Assembly: GCA_977020255.1 (NCBI GenBank)
Contig: CDROCS010004540.1
Coordinates: 62,001 to 126,000 of the forward strand
DNA length: 64,000 nt
Source: Obrimoposthia wandeli
Lineage: Eukaryota
Direction of reading: 5' to 3'
The notes under the pieces were generated by a model. It did not search any database, had not been told where the DNA came from, and worked only from the letters and a program-made list of their open reading frames with translations. Below, one piece after another: positions 2,897 to 62,068 of the stretch. Numbering within the stretch: position 1 is the stretch's first letter; each line of letters starts with the position of its first letter. The translations under genes were made by a program, and so were the position numbers.

Positions 2897-3118
2897 TTAA
2901 GGGTATGCAGCATCGAGGTGAAAGCCAGATGCTGCCAACCAGTTCTCTGCTTCAACTTGATTCGTAAAGCTATTCCCCTGAAAAGGACATGCCTGCTGCA
3001 TAAATTGCTTTGAAAATTCTTTCGCTGTTTGACTATTCCACGACCCCGAAATCGTCGCACAAAGTACATTTCCACTGACTTTAATATCAAAATCACCATG
3101 ATGAAATAATGTGGACAT
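2897..3118 (-). pseudogene. Small conserved hypothetical protein, apparently with an internal in-frame deletion
   Basis: 73-aa ORF from ATG 3118 (AAGGA upstream). The start (HGDFDIKV..SGSWN..TAKEF) and end (FTNQVEAENWLAASGF) resemble, from my recall, the two ends of ~130-aa STAS/SEC14-like marine proteins with the middle missing. Confidence 0.4.
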
Positions 3119-16882: not shown

Positions 16883-17986
16883 CTAACGTCCTAATAGCTG
16901 GTGAATTTCGGTTAACAATTCTTCGGTTTGCTTCCAACTAATGCAAGAATCTGTAATTGATAAACCGTATTCCAAGCCGCTGCCATCTGGCCCATTCATT
17001 CCCTGCTTACCCGCTTGCAGGAAGCTTTCTAGCATCAAACCACTGATCGCAGAATTCCCAGCTCGGTATTGCATCACGACTTGCTTAGCAATATCCAACT
17101 GACGATCATGCTGCTTTTGCGCATTATCATGACTGCAATCAACAATCACCTTCGCGTGCAGCTGATTACCCGCTTTTGCTTTATCAAGCTGAGCCACTGC
17201 GTTTTGAATACTGACATCATCGTAGTTCGTTAGATTGCGTCCACCACGCAATACCACATGCGTATCTGGATTTCCCGGGGTATCTAGCATAGCGATATTG
17301 CCATCAACATCGGTGCCTAAGCAGTGATGACTACGACTTGCAGAAATCATCGCATTAACCGCAGTATCGACCGAGCCATCAGTGCCATTTTTGATCCCCA
17401 CTGGCATCGATAAATGACTAATCATTTCACGATGAATTTGCGATTCTGCGGTGCGCGCACCAATCGCCGTCCAGCTGATTAAATCTTCTAAGTAGCTCAT
17501 CGTCATTGGATTTAGCGCTTCTGTCGCGAGCGGCAAACCCATTTCCACCAACTGCAATAGCAAGGTTCGAGAAACTTCTAAGCCTTTTTTGATATCGCCA
17601 GCACCATTACGATCAGGATCGTAAGCGAGGCCCTTCCAACCCGTAGTCGTTCTTGGTTTCTCTACGTACGCTCGCATTACAATTAATAAACGGTCAGAAA
17701 GCTGCTCGTTCAAAGCAACCAAACGCTGGCCATACTCTAATACCGCTACGGGATCGTGCAGCGAACAAGGGCCAGTAATAATCAATAAACGATCATCCTC
17801 ACCTTGTAACAACTGGCGTATTTGCTGACGCTGCTGATCGACTTGGCGCTGTAAAACGTCACTCAATGGCAAAGCTTGTTTCAACTGCCGTGGCGTCGGT
17901 AAAGGCCGTACTGCCGCTAGTTGATTGTCAGTAGTAATGGTCGTGGCCTGAGGCTCTGTTACTAATGCTTGTACGTTGCTATTCAT
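16883..17986 (-). CDS. 3-deoxy-7-phosphoheptulonate (DAHP) synthase, class I (AroF/G/H family)
   Basis: GPCSLHD, RAYVEKPRT, WTAIGART, KNGTDG, LRGG, DCSHDN, ESFL, SITDSC. Confidence 0.95.
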   Translation of the reverse strand: MNSNVQALVTEPQATTITTDNQLAAVRPLPTPRQLKQALPLSDVLQRQVDQQRQQIRQLLQGEDDRLLIITGPCSLHDPVAVLEYGQRLVALNEQLSDRLLIVMRAYVEKPRTTTGWKGLAYDPDRNGAGDIKKGLEVSRTLLLQLVEMGLPLATEALNPMTMSYLEDLISWTAIGARTAESQIHREMISHLSMPVGIKNGTDGSVDTAVNAMISASRSHHCLGTDVDGNIAMLDTPGNPDTHVVLRGGRNLTNYDDVSIQNAVAQLDKAKAGNQLHAKVIVDCSHDNAQKQHDRQLDIAKQVVMQYRAGNSAISGLMLESFLQAGKQGMNGPDGSGLEYGLSITDSCISWKQTEELLTEIHQLLGR

Positions 17987-18052
17987 GGTGTACTCCTAGA
18001 TTTAATCTTCCCCCTTTTTTATTACGGCTTTAGAACAATGTTAAAACCGAGC

Positions 18053-18090
18053 AAAAAAAAACCCCGACCAGCTAACTGCTAATCGGGGTT
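18053..18090 (-). terminator. Attenuator (intrinsic terminator) in the DAHP synthase 5' leader
   Basis: mRNA AACCCCGAUUAGC-AGUUA-GCUGGUCGGGGUU (13-bp stem, 2 G-U) running into a 9-U tract, ~65 nt before the start codon. Confidence 0.85.
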
Positions 18091-18145
18091 CTGTAAGCAG
18101 TCGGCTGATTAGCCGGGCTGCTTATTGAATTCTATAAATCGAATA

Positions 18146-18307
18146 TCAAGTGCGACCCAGCTTGAAGCTAAAATAGCCCCAGAAAAACTCGGTAAAGCAC
18201 CAATACTGTTTTGATAAGCACTGTTTTGACAAGCACACAGAATCACCACGGCAAGAAGCAGAGCGGATAAGGTGTGTCATTTGAGTAACAGCATTTAATG
18301 TATTCAT
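18146..18307 (-). CDS. Aromatic-amino-acid leader peptide (not in ORF track)
   Basis: Hand translation: MNTLNAVTQMTHLIRSASCRGDSVCLSKQCLSKQYWCFTEFFWGYFSFKLGRT*. Alternative start ATG 18280. Confidence 0.8.
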   Translation of the reverse strand: MNTLNAVTQMTHLIRSASCRGDSVCLSKQCLSKQYWCFTEFFWGYFSFKLGRT

Positions 18308-18459
18308 ACATTCATCATAACCAAGTAATTTCAGATTGCAAAGGTTGATGTGTAACTAACATACCTGCCCATGCAGTCAGCTTCTAACCCTCTAACATTT
18401 CATCTATACTTCAATCATTATCGTTATACCTCATTTTTAAAGCATTTCAGAGAACCCTT

Positions 18460-19383
18460 ATGACTTACCCACGCGACATGCTGGGCTACGGCCAACACAG
18501 CCTAAACCCTCAATGGCCGAACAAAGCCAAAGTAGCCCTACAGTTTGTAATCAACTACGAAGAAGGTGGTGAAAACTGTATTTTGCATGGCGACAAGGCC
18601 TCGGAAGCGTTTTTATCTGAGATCGTTGGCGCGCCTGCCCTTGAGGGTGTGCGTAACATGAACATGGAGTCTATTTACGAATACGGTGCTCGCGCTGGCT
18701 TCTGGCGCTTACACCGCATGTTCACCGAGCGTGATATGCCAGTAACGGTTTATGGTGTAGCAACTGCATTACAGCGTAACCCTGAAATCGTTGCTGCTAT
18801 GAATTCTGCTGATTGGGAAATCGCCTCTCACGGTTTAAAGTGGATCGACTATCAATATATTGATAAAGAAGTCGAGCGTGAACACATGGCCGAAGCCATT
18901 CGTATTCATACCGAAGTCACGGGCAAACGACCACAAGGTTGGTATACCGGCCGCATGAGCCCGAATACTCGTGACCTAGTCGCTGAAGCAGGTGGTTTTG
19001 CTTATGATGCTGACTCTTACGCTGATGATCTTCCCTACTGGAACTACGACTACGAACAGCCGCATCTCGTGATTCCCTATACGTTAGATAGCAACGACAT
19101 GCGCTTTGCGACGAACCAAGGTTTCAACTGTGGCGATCAATTCTTTAGCTACCTAAAAGATTCATTTGATGTGTTATACGCAGAAGGCACCGCTACCGAG
19201 AAGAATCCAGCCGCGCCTAAGATGCTGAGTATCGGTTTACACTGTCGTTTAGTCGGCCGCCCTGGCCGTGCTGCTGCACTGGCACGTTTTCTAGATTATG
19301 TGCAAAGTCACGAAGATGTTTGGGTAACCCGACGTATCGATATCGCCGATCACTGGCGCGCAACTCATCCGCCGAAAGCGTAA
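18460..19383 (+). CDS. puuE: Allantoinase PuuE (polysaccharide deacetylase family)
   Basis: YPRDMLGYG, INYEEGGEN, ESIYEYGARAGFWR, IGLHCRLVGRPGR. Confidence 0.92.
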   Translation: MTYPRDMLGYGQHSLNPQWPNKAKVALQFVINYEEGGENCILHGDKASEAFLSEIVGAPALEGVRNMNMESIYEYGARAGFWRLHRMFTERDMPVTVYGVATALQRNPEIVAAMNSADWEIASHGLKWIDYQYIDKEVEREHMAEAIRIHTEVTGKRPQGWYTGRMSPNTRDLVAEAGGFAYDADSYADDLPYWNYDYEQPHLVIPYTLDSNDMRFATNQGFNCGDQFFSYLKDSFDVLYAEGTATEKNPAAPKMLSIGLHCRLVGRPGRAAALARFLDYVQSHEDVWVTRRIDIADHWRATHPPKA

Positions 19384-19454
19384 TATTATAAAGAGAGCAC
19401 TTCTATCTTAAACTGGGAGTGTTCAAGCAGTTTCAACTATTAATTTTCACAAAA

Positions 19455-20372
19455 TCAAATAACAGAGTCTGCTTGCCACTGCTTAAGAGTTTGCTTTACG
19501 TATGTTTTATAGGTACGGGGTGGGCGACCTAATAGCTCTTCGGTTATCGCGAGATGCTTAGAAAAGGTCGGCAATTTATATTTCCGAATCAGTCGATAAG
19601 TTTTCAATAAGTCGATTCGTTTTTTACCTGATAAATTTTTCTTTAATAAAGATTCCCAAAGGCTGTCATCTTCATAATAATTCACTGAGTAACCCATTGC
19701 ATTACTCCATACTGCCGCACATTGTGGCCCTGATAGTGACTCTGGCCCTACTATGGGATAAGCCCCAGACAAAATAGTTTGATCGGTTAATGCACTTACC
19801 GCTGCTTCACCAATATCTTCGGCATCTACTCTGTTAATGCCTTTTAAACCAAGAGGCTGCGGAAAAAGGTGGTCCTTCATAAGACTAGTGCGTATCAACT
19901 CGTCATTCTGATAAAAATTGGTTGGCATTAATATAACGACATCATTCGCCAGCTGACGCACTTTTTCAGAAAGCCGAAGTTTAGATTTATAGTGACTCAT
20001 CACAGCTTCGAAAGCGCTTCGCTTAATCCAGCGCAACACTCTATTTCCACCATCAACATGCACACCCACGAAGACGATTCGGATTGATCTGACATTACAG
20101 AAAACAGTAAATTGTTCTGCTATCATTTCTTCCTCTTCTAAATGCGGTGATACATAAAAGGCCGCACTAATACCCTCCAATGAACGCTGCACCGCAGCGG
20201 GATCAGAAAGATCTCCTTCCACAATCTCTACGTCCGCAGGCAATCCCAATGCCCGATGTTTAGATCGCACAAGAACACGAATGCGCAAGCCTTTTTTAAT
20301 CGCCGCTTTTAATACTTCACGACCGACTGTTCCCGTTACTCCCAAGATTAGGATGCAATTTTTATTGCTCAC
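19455..20372 (-). CDS. NmrA-like NAD(P)-binding protein
   Basis: GVTGTVG Rossmann motif, VEGDL, VDAEDIG. Confidence 0.8.
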   Translation of the reverse strand: MSNKNCILILGVTGTVGREVLKAAIKKGLRIRVLVRSKHRALGLPADVEIVEGDLSDPAAVQRSLEGISAAFYVSPHLEEEEMIAEQFTVFCNVRSIRIVFVGVHVDGGNRVLRWIKRSAFEAVMSHYKSKLRLSEKVRQLANDVVILMPTNFYQNDELIRTSLMKDHLFPQPLGLKGINRVDAEDIGEAAVSALTDQTILSGAYPIVGPESLSGPQCAAVWSNAMGYSVNYYEDDSLWESLLKKNLSGKKRIDLLKTYRLIRKYKLPTFSKHLAITEELLGRPPRTYKTYVKQTLKQWQADSVI

Positions 20373-20555: not shown

Positions 20556-22604
<2,049 letters not shown>

Positions 22605-61012: not shown

Positions 61013-62068
61013 ATGAAGCTAGATATTGAAACCCTACTTGATGGCGAAAAGGCCCTAGCGAATGCACCCAAAACTGTATTAGCTGATGGTCGTTTCTGTA
61101 TTCCACAGCACTATTTAAGCTACCAACACAGCTTACAGTCTGTGGAGCAATTACTACTGGATATTGATTTTGACCCTCGCTATCCGATATTTGCCAGCCA
61201 AGATGAAACGGGGATCTATGTGCAGGTCGGTATTATTGGTGTAGATAATTACAAGTCAGCCAGTAACGCACAAGAAAAAGTGGTGTATGGGCGCAAGTGG
61301 CGCGTAGAACCTCAGCTGCCATCTTCTGAAATCATACAGACGGTTTTTTTAGCATTAAAAAAAGCTCGCGAGCACGAAGTTCGTGAACTGTTTAGGGTCG
61401 TGCTTCAAGATAAGATAACCACGCCTTTTAATAATCATCACGACCTGCCATTGCTTACCAATAGCCGAGAGCGCTTGCAGCCAAAAACAAAAGACTCTTA
61501 TCTGAAATCTCAAGTATTATTTCAACTAGAAATCAAGCAAACACTTGATTCGATTCAGTACGATGGTGTGCAGTTTGAGCTGATAGAGTTGCTGCTTAGG
61601 CCCACGGGGGAGTATCTGGTTGAGCTAAAACTATTGCCTCAAGCAGGTCGTCAGTTAACCGAACTTTCGGGCACTGATTACATCAGTTTTATGCTGGCCA
61701 AACCGACGGTTAATTATTTCACCCACCAACTTATGCAGCATTTTATTCAATTAAGCGATCGCTATATTGATGAACAGTTTCATTACAGAGGGTTTAATCG
61801 CTTTAGTTGGGGAAATGATGTGACCGCCATTGCTCAACTATCAACAGAGGTTCGCCAACTTCATAAATCGACTGATTTAGACGGTTTTAATCAGCACTGG
61901 CAGCAAAGTAATTATGAAACCGATCGCAGTCGTATTCCTGTACTTTCTGCTGGGCCTCTCTGGTACAAGCTTAAGCGCCAGCTAGAATCGTTTTCTCCGA
62001 TTGAAAGCACACTGCCTATTAAAAGCAGCCTGCCTATCCCTTCTCAGCCCATTACTTCTCAGCTATAG
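61013..62068 (+). CDS. Conserved hypothetical protein
   Basis: 351-aa ORF with conserved-looking YGRKWRVEPQLPSSEIIQTVFLALKKAREHEVRELF block. Confidence 0.75.
   Translation: MKLDIETLLDGEKALANAPKTVLADGRFCIPQHYLSYQHSLQSVEQLLLDIDFDPRYPIFASQDETGIYVQVGIIGVDNYKSASNAQEKVVYGRKWRVEPQLPSSEIIQTVFLALKKAREHEVRELFRVVLQDKITTPFNNHHDLPLLTNSRERLQPKTKDSYLKSQVLFQLEIKQTLDSIQYDGVQFELIELLLRPTGEYLVELKLLPQAGRQLTELSGTDYISFMLAKPTVNYFTHQLMQHFIQLSDRYIDEQFHYRGFNRFSWGNDVTAIAQLSTEVRQLHKSTDLDGFNQHWQQSNYETDRSRIPVLSAGPLWYKLKRQLESFSPIESTLPIKSSLPIPSQPITSQL

Follow-up and report, generated by a model that had tools for sequence, protein, structure and literature searches.

The 64,000-nucleotide (nt) stretch analyzed here, hereafter the window (positions 62,001 to 126,000 of contig CDROCS010004540.1, GenBank assembly GCA_977020255.1, deposited under Obrimoposthia wandeli), encodes on its minus strand a class-I (AroF/G/H-type) 3-deoxy-D-arabino-heptulosonate 7-phosphate (DAHP) synthase of 367 amino acids (17986..16883). 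The enzyme assignment proposed earlier from the letters alone holds, with NCBIfam TIGR00034 (aroFGH) matching at an E-value of 1.9e-129 and NF009395 as the best subfamily. The gene is monocistronic and begins 67 nt past a T tract, and its upstream neighbor, the allantoinase gene puuE (18460..19383, plus strand; TIGR03212, E 2.4e-162), is divergently oriented. Between the two genes, the minus strand carries a promoter, a leader open reading frame (ORF), a series of hairpins and an intrinsic terminator. Because the upstream neighbor is divergent and a consensus scan of the 67 nt that separate the T tract from the DAHP synthase ATG found no promoter-like site, this terminator cannot belong to another gene. 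A search of the promoter region (18307-18460) for TyrR boxes with up to three mismatches likewise returned no site, and the total count was at chance level. Here we describe the region as what is very probably a ribosome-mediated leader-peptide transcription attenuator of the six-segment his-operon type that controls DAHP synthase.

The leader ORF, which is uncalled here, spans 18307..18146 and comprises 53 codons and a TGA stop (18148..18146), with the translation MNTLNAVTQMTHLIRSASCRGDSVCLSKQCLSKQYWCFTEFFWGYFSFKLGRT. Its first 34 codons include no Phe, Trp or Tyr, and codons 35-48 (18205..18164) form the regulatory run YWCFTEFFWGYFSF, with two Tyr, two Trp and five Phe; translation confirmed both the ORF and the run as originally described. 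Nine aromatic residues in 14 codons is a density found only once among the ~60,700 stop-free 14-codon stretches in the six frames of the 64 kb (binomial P ~1.4e-6 per stretch). The runner-up, with 8 of 14 (22390-22437, minus strand), lies out of frame within a gene of 680 amino acids (20556..22598), lacks a terminator context and is probably a chance occurrence. Pfam and NCBIfam searches with the leader peptides returned zero matches. We also observed that 10 of the 14 codons in the regulatory run (18164-18205, minus strand) are of the UNN type (Tyr, Trp, Cys, Phe). UNN codons are read by tRNAs carrying the MiaA-dependent i6A37 modification, and an attenuator with such sensor codons should therefore also respond to tRNA modification status. 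Such a response has been described for the trp leaders of Pseudomonas aeruginosa (PMC13434334).

To place the element in a comparative context, 80 related loci (numbered with the prefix L) were fetched using DAHP synthase as the query, with one genome per species. They range from Oleispira, with 95% amino acid identity of DAHP synthase, down to many Pseudomonas at ~50%, and include Thalassolituus, Bermanella, Bacterioplanoides, Marinobacter, Methylophaga, Alcanivorax and Salinisphaera. The high identity to Oleispira indicates that the window derives from a genome of Oleispira-like type. The leader element is present in 80/80 loci, on the same strand and upstream of the orthologous DAHP synthase; in a truncated locus (L002) and for a more distant copy in L014 it was recovered by sequence profile. 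Every locus has the same layout, a small ORF with an aromatic tail followed by hairpins and then a terminator, and the homologous leader ORFs encode 25-64 amino acids with conserved tails such as FWGYFSFKLGRT-stop, WWFGYGYFSQEPGR-x-stop and FYFGYWFSHWRA-stop. The last 22 codons contain 2-5 Phe, 1-4 Tyr and 1-3 Trp in all 79 of the readable leaders, so that the proposed alignment of regions upstream of orthologous genes did yield an upstream ORF rich in all three aromatics, together with covarying stems. The N-terminal part of the peptide drifts freely in length and sequence among loci, and the tail is conserved down to synonymous positions (GGCUAUUUUAGCC), a combination that points to selection on RNA and codon identity rather than on protein.

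The RNA that follows from this sequence can be divided into six segments, which we examined by minimum-free-energy folding and in an alignment of 25 Oleispira-type elements, where the proportion of paired cells was compared with slid controls. Segment 1 (18174..18201), identified in the minimum-free-energy fold, is the 5′ arm of a leader hairpin and is built of aromatic codons. Segment 2 (S1; 18150..18162) consists of the last leader codons, K L G R, and pairs either with segment 1 or with segment 3. In the resulting 1:2 hairpin (−21.1 kcal/mol), aromatic codons (for example UGGUGGUUUGGUUAU) pair with the last codons of the leader (GAGCCGGGCUGCC) around a tip, GGGGCUAUUUUAGCUUC (18164..18180), whose family core is GGCUAUUUUAGCC. 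The tip is paired in 97% of cells, compared with 19-57% in slid controls; it shows G-C/G-U/A-U exchanges, and its nucleotide core is shared with Pseudomonas P15, an Rfam family considered below. Equivalent 1:2 hairpins in 25 relatives have z-scores of −0.4 to −5.5, mostly at or below −2.5. In the window fold, a small spacer hairpin (18125..18149) is predicted to separate the stop codon from segment 3. Segment 3 (A; 18111..18124) pairs with S1 or with segment 4. Segment 4 (B; 18094..18106), the strand that forms the antiterminator, has two possible partners, A and the inner terminator (18084..18068). Segments 5 and 6 (C and D; 18053..18092) make up the intrinsic terminator, with a stem at 18092..18058, a 5-nt AGUUA loop and nine T residues at 18061..18053. 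Its 15 pairs, counting G-U and A-U and including 7 G-C, amount to −23.5 kcal/mol; the terminator and its nine-U tract ending at 18053 had been correctly recognized, and the 13 base pairs then assigned to the stem are close enough.

The alignment supports five helices, of which neighboring ones are mutually exclusive. Besides the leader hairpin tip, these are the S1:A (2:A) helix (80% of cells paired, slid controls 19-44%, double changes at 8/12 pairs, −17.4 kcal/mol), which is the helix that RNAalifold selects as its consensus; the A:B anti-antiterminator hairpin (87%, controls 8-54%, double changes at 6/11 pairs, −15.0 kcal/mol); the B:C antiterminator, in which B pairs with the inner terminator (84%, controls 6-37%, double changes at 5/11 pairs); and the C:D terminator (94%, controls 23-50%, double changes at 4/12 pairs). 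Pairing energies in the window range from −13.6 to −17.4 kcal/mol for neighboring segments and from −6 to −12 kcal/mol for non-neighbors. Individual relatives illustrate the linked changes: the window pair GCCGACUGC/GCAGUUAGC is replaced by GCCAGCUGC/GCAGCUAGC in L006-L008 and by a perfect 11-bp AGCCAGCUGCC/GGCAGCUGGCU in L022, and in Methylophaga a three-way change in A/B/C converts GGCAG/CUGCC/GGCAG to GGUAG/CUACC/GGUcAG. An alternative leader ORF in another frame (18249..18109, 46 amino acids), with its stop in the A:B loop, was considered and rejected, because conservation is lacking and just two Phe stand near its end.

These helices refine the wiring that was first proposed. The original prediction had placed a leader-peptide attenuator here and had identified segment 18110..18096 as an antiterminator able to pair with AGCAGUUAGCUGGUC; counted by hand, 13/15 positions do pair, and the pairing core is kept in relatives. 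Both the attenuator architecture and the antiterminator are therefore retained. What had been overlooked is the A:B hairpin, which locks B (18106..18094), and the end of the leader captures segment A (18124..18111) rather than the antiterminator strand. Similarly, of the two pairings assigned to the leader end, AGCUGGG:CCCGGCU is real and covaries, whereas GGCUAUUUUAGC:GCUAAUCAGCC is not conserved: in relatives a variable loop stands in the partner's place, and GGCUAUUUUAGCC makes its own hairpin tip.

The earlier suggestion to fold the leader with and without a simulated ribosome proved informative for a transcript ended just before the 3′ arm of the terminator, with 30 nt masked around each ribosomal A-site codon. 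Full-length equilibrium folding was set aside as a test of the switch, being uninformative because the terminator remains unchanged. When the ribosomal A site occupies any of the codons S31 to Y45, the simulated pairing probabilities are 0.87-1.0 for S1:A, at most 0.11 for A:B and 0.77-0.88 for B:C; this stall zone includes both Tyr, both Trp and three of the Phe codons. With the A site anywhere from F46 through the stop, segment 2 is masked, S1:A is low, A:B rises to 0.74-0.89 and B:C falls to 0-0.17. Without a ribosome, the values are 0.17 for S1:A, 0.73 for A:B and 0.16 for B:C. The same switch appears in most relatives under this truncated-transcript simulation.

Together, the 80/80 conservation, the covariation in all of the alternative helices and the simulated, thermodynamic switching logic give the attenuator reading strong in silico support. 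In the mechanism that we propose, we infer the transcription start site, the stalling, the amino acids sensed and the effect in vivo. Transcription would start at ~18307, probably at the leader ATG itself, and the leader ORF would be read from a leaderless 5′ end. The RNA could then adopt either of two sets of folds: 1:2, A:B and the terminator as three consecutive hairpins, or 2:A together with B:C, in which B:C occupies the 5′ arm and loop of the terminator. With an ample supply of charged Phe-, Tyr- and Trp-tRNAs, the ribosome would reach the UGA at 18148 and cover segment 2, allowing A:B and the terminator to form and transcription to end at ~18053. When any one aromatic tRNA is scarce, the ribosome would stall within Y W C F T E F F W G Y and melt segment 1, leaving segment 2 free to capture A; B, once released, would pair with the nascent 5′ arm of the terminator, and RNA polymerase would enter the DAHP synthase gene. 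In the absence of translation, 1:2, A:B and the terminator would form, giving superattenuation.

Several results weigh against this account, in whole or in part. Four loci (L013, L016, L020 and L022) favor B:C at every ribosome position in the truncated-transcript simulation, which is calculated at equilibrium. Full-length equilibrium folding with a masked ribosome yields a terminator probability of ~0.9 at every stall position, so that the model depends on co-transcriptional kinetics, a dependence common to all such attenuators. A ribosome stalled at one of the last two to three aromatic codons (F46, F48) is predicted to cover segment 2 and hence to favor termination, which implies that not all nine aromatic codons can be sensors. 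Finally, the leader is long, at 53 codons, and has no Shine-Dalgarno sequence, so its translation depends on the inferred leaderless start.

The case for that start comes from the promoter. A consensus scan identified a sigma-70-type promoter at 18341..18314 on the minus strand, with a −35 hexamer TTGCAA (18341..18336), a 16-nt spacer and a −10 hexamer TATGAT (18319..18314). The −10 hexamer ends 6 nt ahead of the leader ATG, from which the transcript is predicted to begin at or next to the ATG (~18307). This arrangement recurs: in 26/28 Oleispira-type loci an in-frame ATG lies 6-8 nt past a good −10 hexamer and lacks a Shine-Dalgarno sequence, and a TTGCAA-like −35 hexamer is found 16-18 nt further upstream of the −10. 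Pseudomonas and Alcanivorax leaders carry GGAG ahead of the ATG. Judged from these spacings, the Oleispira-type leader ORF appears to be translated from the 5′ end of its transcript. Leaderless translation of leader peptides is known from actinobacteria; we know of no documented case of a leader ORF translated in this way in Gammaproteobacteria, which would make it a small but unusual detail. Separately, we noted that the first eight leader codons, M-(N/K)-(T/I)-L-(N/K)-A-V-(T/S) (18283-18307, minus strand), are kept in Oleispira and Thalassolituus and that the next ~25 codons drift; these eight codons may be constrained as the initially transcribed and translated part of a leaderless mRNA.

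We put the chances that the attenuator senses all three of Phe, Tyr and Trp at about even; the idea is plausible because codons for each are encoded universally and lie within the effective stall zone. A real attenuator might instead sense only one or two aromatics, most likely Phe, with the Trp and Tyr codons kept mainly as a hairpin arm (UGG/UAU/UUU). Phe is the commonest aromatic codon, Trp is often single (median of 1 per leader), and the aromatic codons base-pair with segment 2 and are hence constrained by RNA structure. There is also a precedent in the aroR leader of Corynebacterium glutamicum, which responded to Phe limitation only (PMC11802643) and which cautions that an encoded amino acid need not be sensed. 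Against this, all three amino acids occur in 79/79 divergent leaders, although other codons could build the arm, and in the simulation two Trp, two Tyr and three Phe codons all fall in the zone where a stall yields the antiterminator. We consider such partial sensing possible, if somewhat on the unlikely side.

A different function for the transcript altogether was also considered, in which the ~255-nt RNA acts primarily in trans as a small RNA (sRNA), its ORF is incidental or encodes a small protein, and DAHP synthase has its own promoter. The expression evidence bears on both this idea and attenuation. Contigs assembled from RNA libraries cover only 18044-18279, within the leader region, and three of them, including a 218-nt contig of a close relative, terminate precisely at 18053, the last position of the T tract. 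The coding sequence at 17600-17940 is covered in 0/4 RNA runs, and a low-depth (2.7) contig in run X2 spans the DAHP synthase start codon (17962-18014). This pattern is weakly consistent with an abundant terminated leader RNA; set against that interpretation, the data are assembled metatranscriptome contigs rather than reads, one run is flagged as "probably DNA", and contigs of relatives might match only the most conserved stretch. RNA-library contigs over the leader alone would also suit a free-standing sRNA, as would the listing of the Pseudomonas homolog in Rfam as "Gene; sRNA P15" and the discrete ~180-nt band reported for P15 in both growth phases (PMC1524904). Elsewhere, terminated leaders can act in trans, as can the leader peptide peTrpL (PMC7298713). 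However, the 67 nt from the terminator to the DAHP synthase ATG hold no promoter-like site, the element always lies upstream of the same gene on the same strand, and covarying, mutually exclusive helices and the logic of the ORF position would be purposeless in a plain sRNA. The small-protein variant is further opposed by the freedom in length and sequence of the N-terminal two thirds of the peptide. A primarily trans-acting RNA is thus very improbable, and the leader RNA may have an additional role in trans beside attenuation.

Equally improbable is a three-part version of the attenuator in which the leader end (GGCUAUUUUAGC, AGCUGGG) directly sequesters the antiterminator strand until a stalled ribosome frees it: AGCUGGG:CCCGGCU does pair and covary, but CCCGGCU belongs to segment A rather than to the strand that pairs with the terminator, GGCUAUUUUAGC:GCUAAUCAGCC has no conserved partner because the loop sequence differs in relatives, the A:B hairpin (18124..18094; −15.0 kcal/mol, 87% of cells) is ignored, and with segment 2 masked the simulated RNA folds into A:B without an antiterminator, whereas this wiring requires the reverse.

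With the six-segment attenuator as the preferred reading, its relationship to P15 deserves attention. The Rfam model RF00627 ("Pseudomonas sRNA P15") matches the homologous element in 7/7 Pseudomonas loci tested, with 92-127 bits against a gathering threshold of 70 bits. The same model found no match in window positions 17000-19500, even at E-values up to 10, and none in the tested Alcanivorax, Marinobacter, Methylophaga, Salinisphaera and other Oleispira-type loci. Conversely, an nhmmer profile of the Oleispira-type alignment found no Pseudomonas locus and only one Alcanivoracaceae locus, weakly (E 0.002), so that the case for homology to P15 at the RNA level comes from the common core, the peptide and synteny. 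Like the window element, P15 lies directly upstream of an orthologous class-I DAHP synthase gene, on the same strand, and ends in a Rho-independent terminator. It is also built in the same way, from an ORF with an aromatic tail (FYFGYWFSHWRA-stop), a leader hairpin, a middle hairpin and an intrinsic terminator, and its first hairpin covers the codons F-G-Y-W-F-S-H-W-R-A-stop. The core GG(C/G)UAU..UUUAGCC and the peptide tail F-Y-F-G-Y-(W)-F-S are common to P15 and the Oleispira type, and the Bermanella core (L009/L010), UUUUAUUUUGG(C/G)UAU(UGG)UUUAGCC, differs very little from that of Pseudomonas beyond one inserted Trp codon.

Livny et al. (2006) described P15 as a ~180-nt Northern band detected in both growth phases, and placed it 221 nt upstream of a 1092-nt gene on the same strand (PMC1524904); the band is of the size expected of a terminated leader. 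Rfam files P15 as a gene (sRNA) of unknown function and not as a cis-acting leader, and NCBI annotates its leader ORF, at most, as a "hypothetical protein". The two types also differ in detail, with Shine-Dalgarno sequences in Pseudomonas leaders where the Oleispira type appears leaderless, and with a second upstream ORF ahead of the Pseudomonas gene besides the P15 leader. In a single P15 locus (L035), the ribosome-mask simulation, by a crude measure, gave no clean switch. The likeness of P15 to the window element is accordingly one of homology of layout, as read from sequence, and we make no further claim about mechanism on that basis. A literature search found no paper that reads P15 or the PA2943 upstream region as an attenuator or that prints the leader motifs, although papers missed by that search may exist; a study from 2026 on attenuation by leader peptides and on MiaA in P. 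aeruginosa covers the two trpL leaders only (PMC13434334). The window element likely supplies a function for the orphan P15 family. There are roughly equal odds, in our estimation, that the whole family, comprising the Oleispira type and P15, is a multivalent attenuator that reads the charging of all three aromatic tRNAs to set shikimate flux, being leaderless in the Oleispira type and reporting MiaA modification too.

Two further features were seen in the related loci. Many other taxa, unlike the window, have an additional small ORF, preceded by its own Shine-Dalgarno sequence, after the first terminator and ~40-220 nt upstream of the DAHP synthase ATG (at 3001 in the fetched loci); it occurs in L012, L016, L017, L021-L024 and L030 and, among Pseudomonas, for example in L033, L035, L037, L041, L049 and L075. 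Tyr and Arg abound in this ORF, which carries a conserved W-R-F-S motif (CGAUUUAGC; for example MTTYRTDRYYRYDWRFSRF..., ...GRFSCGGLVAYWP-stop and ...WRFYRY-stop) and is followed by no U-tract terminator. It may represent another control element in tandem with the first, which might act on translation, or it may have arisen by duplication of the first leader and then diverged. In the flank of L013 (6867-6954, minus strand) lies a glycine riboswitch aptamer (RF00504, 62 bits), which is unrelated to the attenuator.

Attenuators of amino acid biosynthesis are best known from enterobacteria, where they include trpL, pheL/pheA, pheST, the six-segment his leader and the multivalent thr and ilvGMEDA leaders; a single leader can sense several amino acids, as for thr (Thr, Ile) and ilv (Ile, Leu, Val). 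E. coli DAHP synthases are instead controlled by TyrR/TrpR repression. The window element shares with the enterobacterial leaders a short ORF that is translated in step with transcription and is full of codons for the pathway products, alternative hairpins that decide the fate of a terminator and superattenuation when translation is absent. It differs from them in targeting the common first step of a branched pathway, in encoding all three end products and in the length of its leader (53 codons), which is apparently leaderless. Searched against Rfam, the window matched no family, and the leader families, including Trp, Phe, His, Thr and Leu, gave no covariance-model match; the sole sub-threshold Rfam match within the element was NsiR1 (22.6 bits against a gathering threshold of 39), which covers the terminator only.

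The original prediction knew of no characterized example of such control, which does not hold: the aroR-aroF leader of C. glutamicum has been characterized (PMC11802643), attenuators have been predicted in Vibrio (PMC1173090), and a homolog of the element is present in Rfam as P15. According to PMC11802643, which summarizes Neshat et al. 2014, a Phe-Tyr-Phe leader attenuates the C. glutamicum aroF DAHP synthase operon, and its transcription is raised by Phe limitation only, with Tyr availability having no effect. Aromatic leader codons, ribosome stalling and the DAHP synthase target make that system similar to the window element, a likeness of function only; it belongs to another phylum, has a three-codon motif without Trp and responds effectively only to Phe limitation. 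The Vibrio attenuators, predicted ahead of aroF(aroA-I-alpha_Y)-tyrA in the Merino database as cited in PMC1173090, share a predicted terminator/antiterminator before a gammaproteobacterial DAHP synthase, but they are database predictions only and concern another operon (aroF-tyrA) in another lineage. What is new here is a divergent member; the regulatory idea of leader-peptide control of DAHP synthase is already established.

Collectively, our results extend a P15-like family well beyond Pseudomonas, to genera in which the Rfam model finds nothing, and they give P15, which Rfam has listed since 2006 as an sRNA without known function, a concrete and testable function. They also bear on annotation, as the leader ORF is uncalled here and, where called in Pseudomonas, appears only as a "hypothetical protein", and on how tRNA-modification (MiaA) phenotypes in aromatic metabolism are read. 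Where aromatic production is engineered in Pseudomonas and its relatives, DAHP synthase should be de-repressed once the leader is removed. Attenuation, and not TyrR/TrpR repression, probably governs entry into the shikimate pathway in a large set of Gammaproteobacteria living in the sea and in soil.

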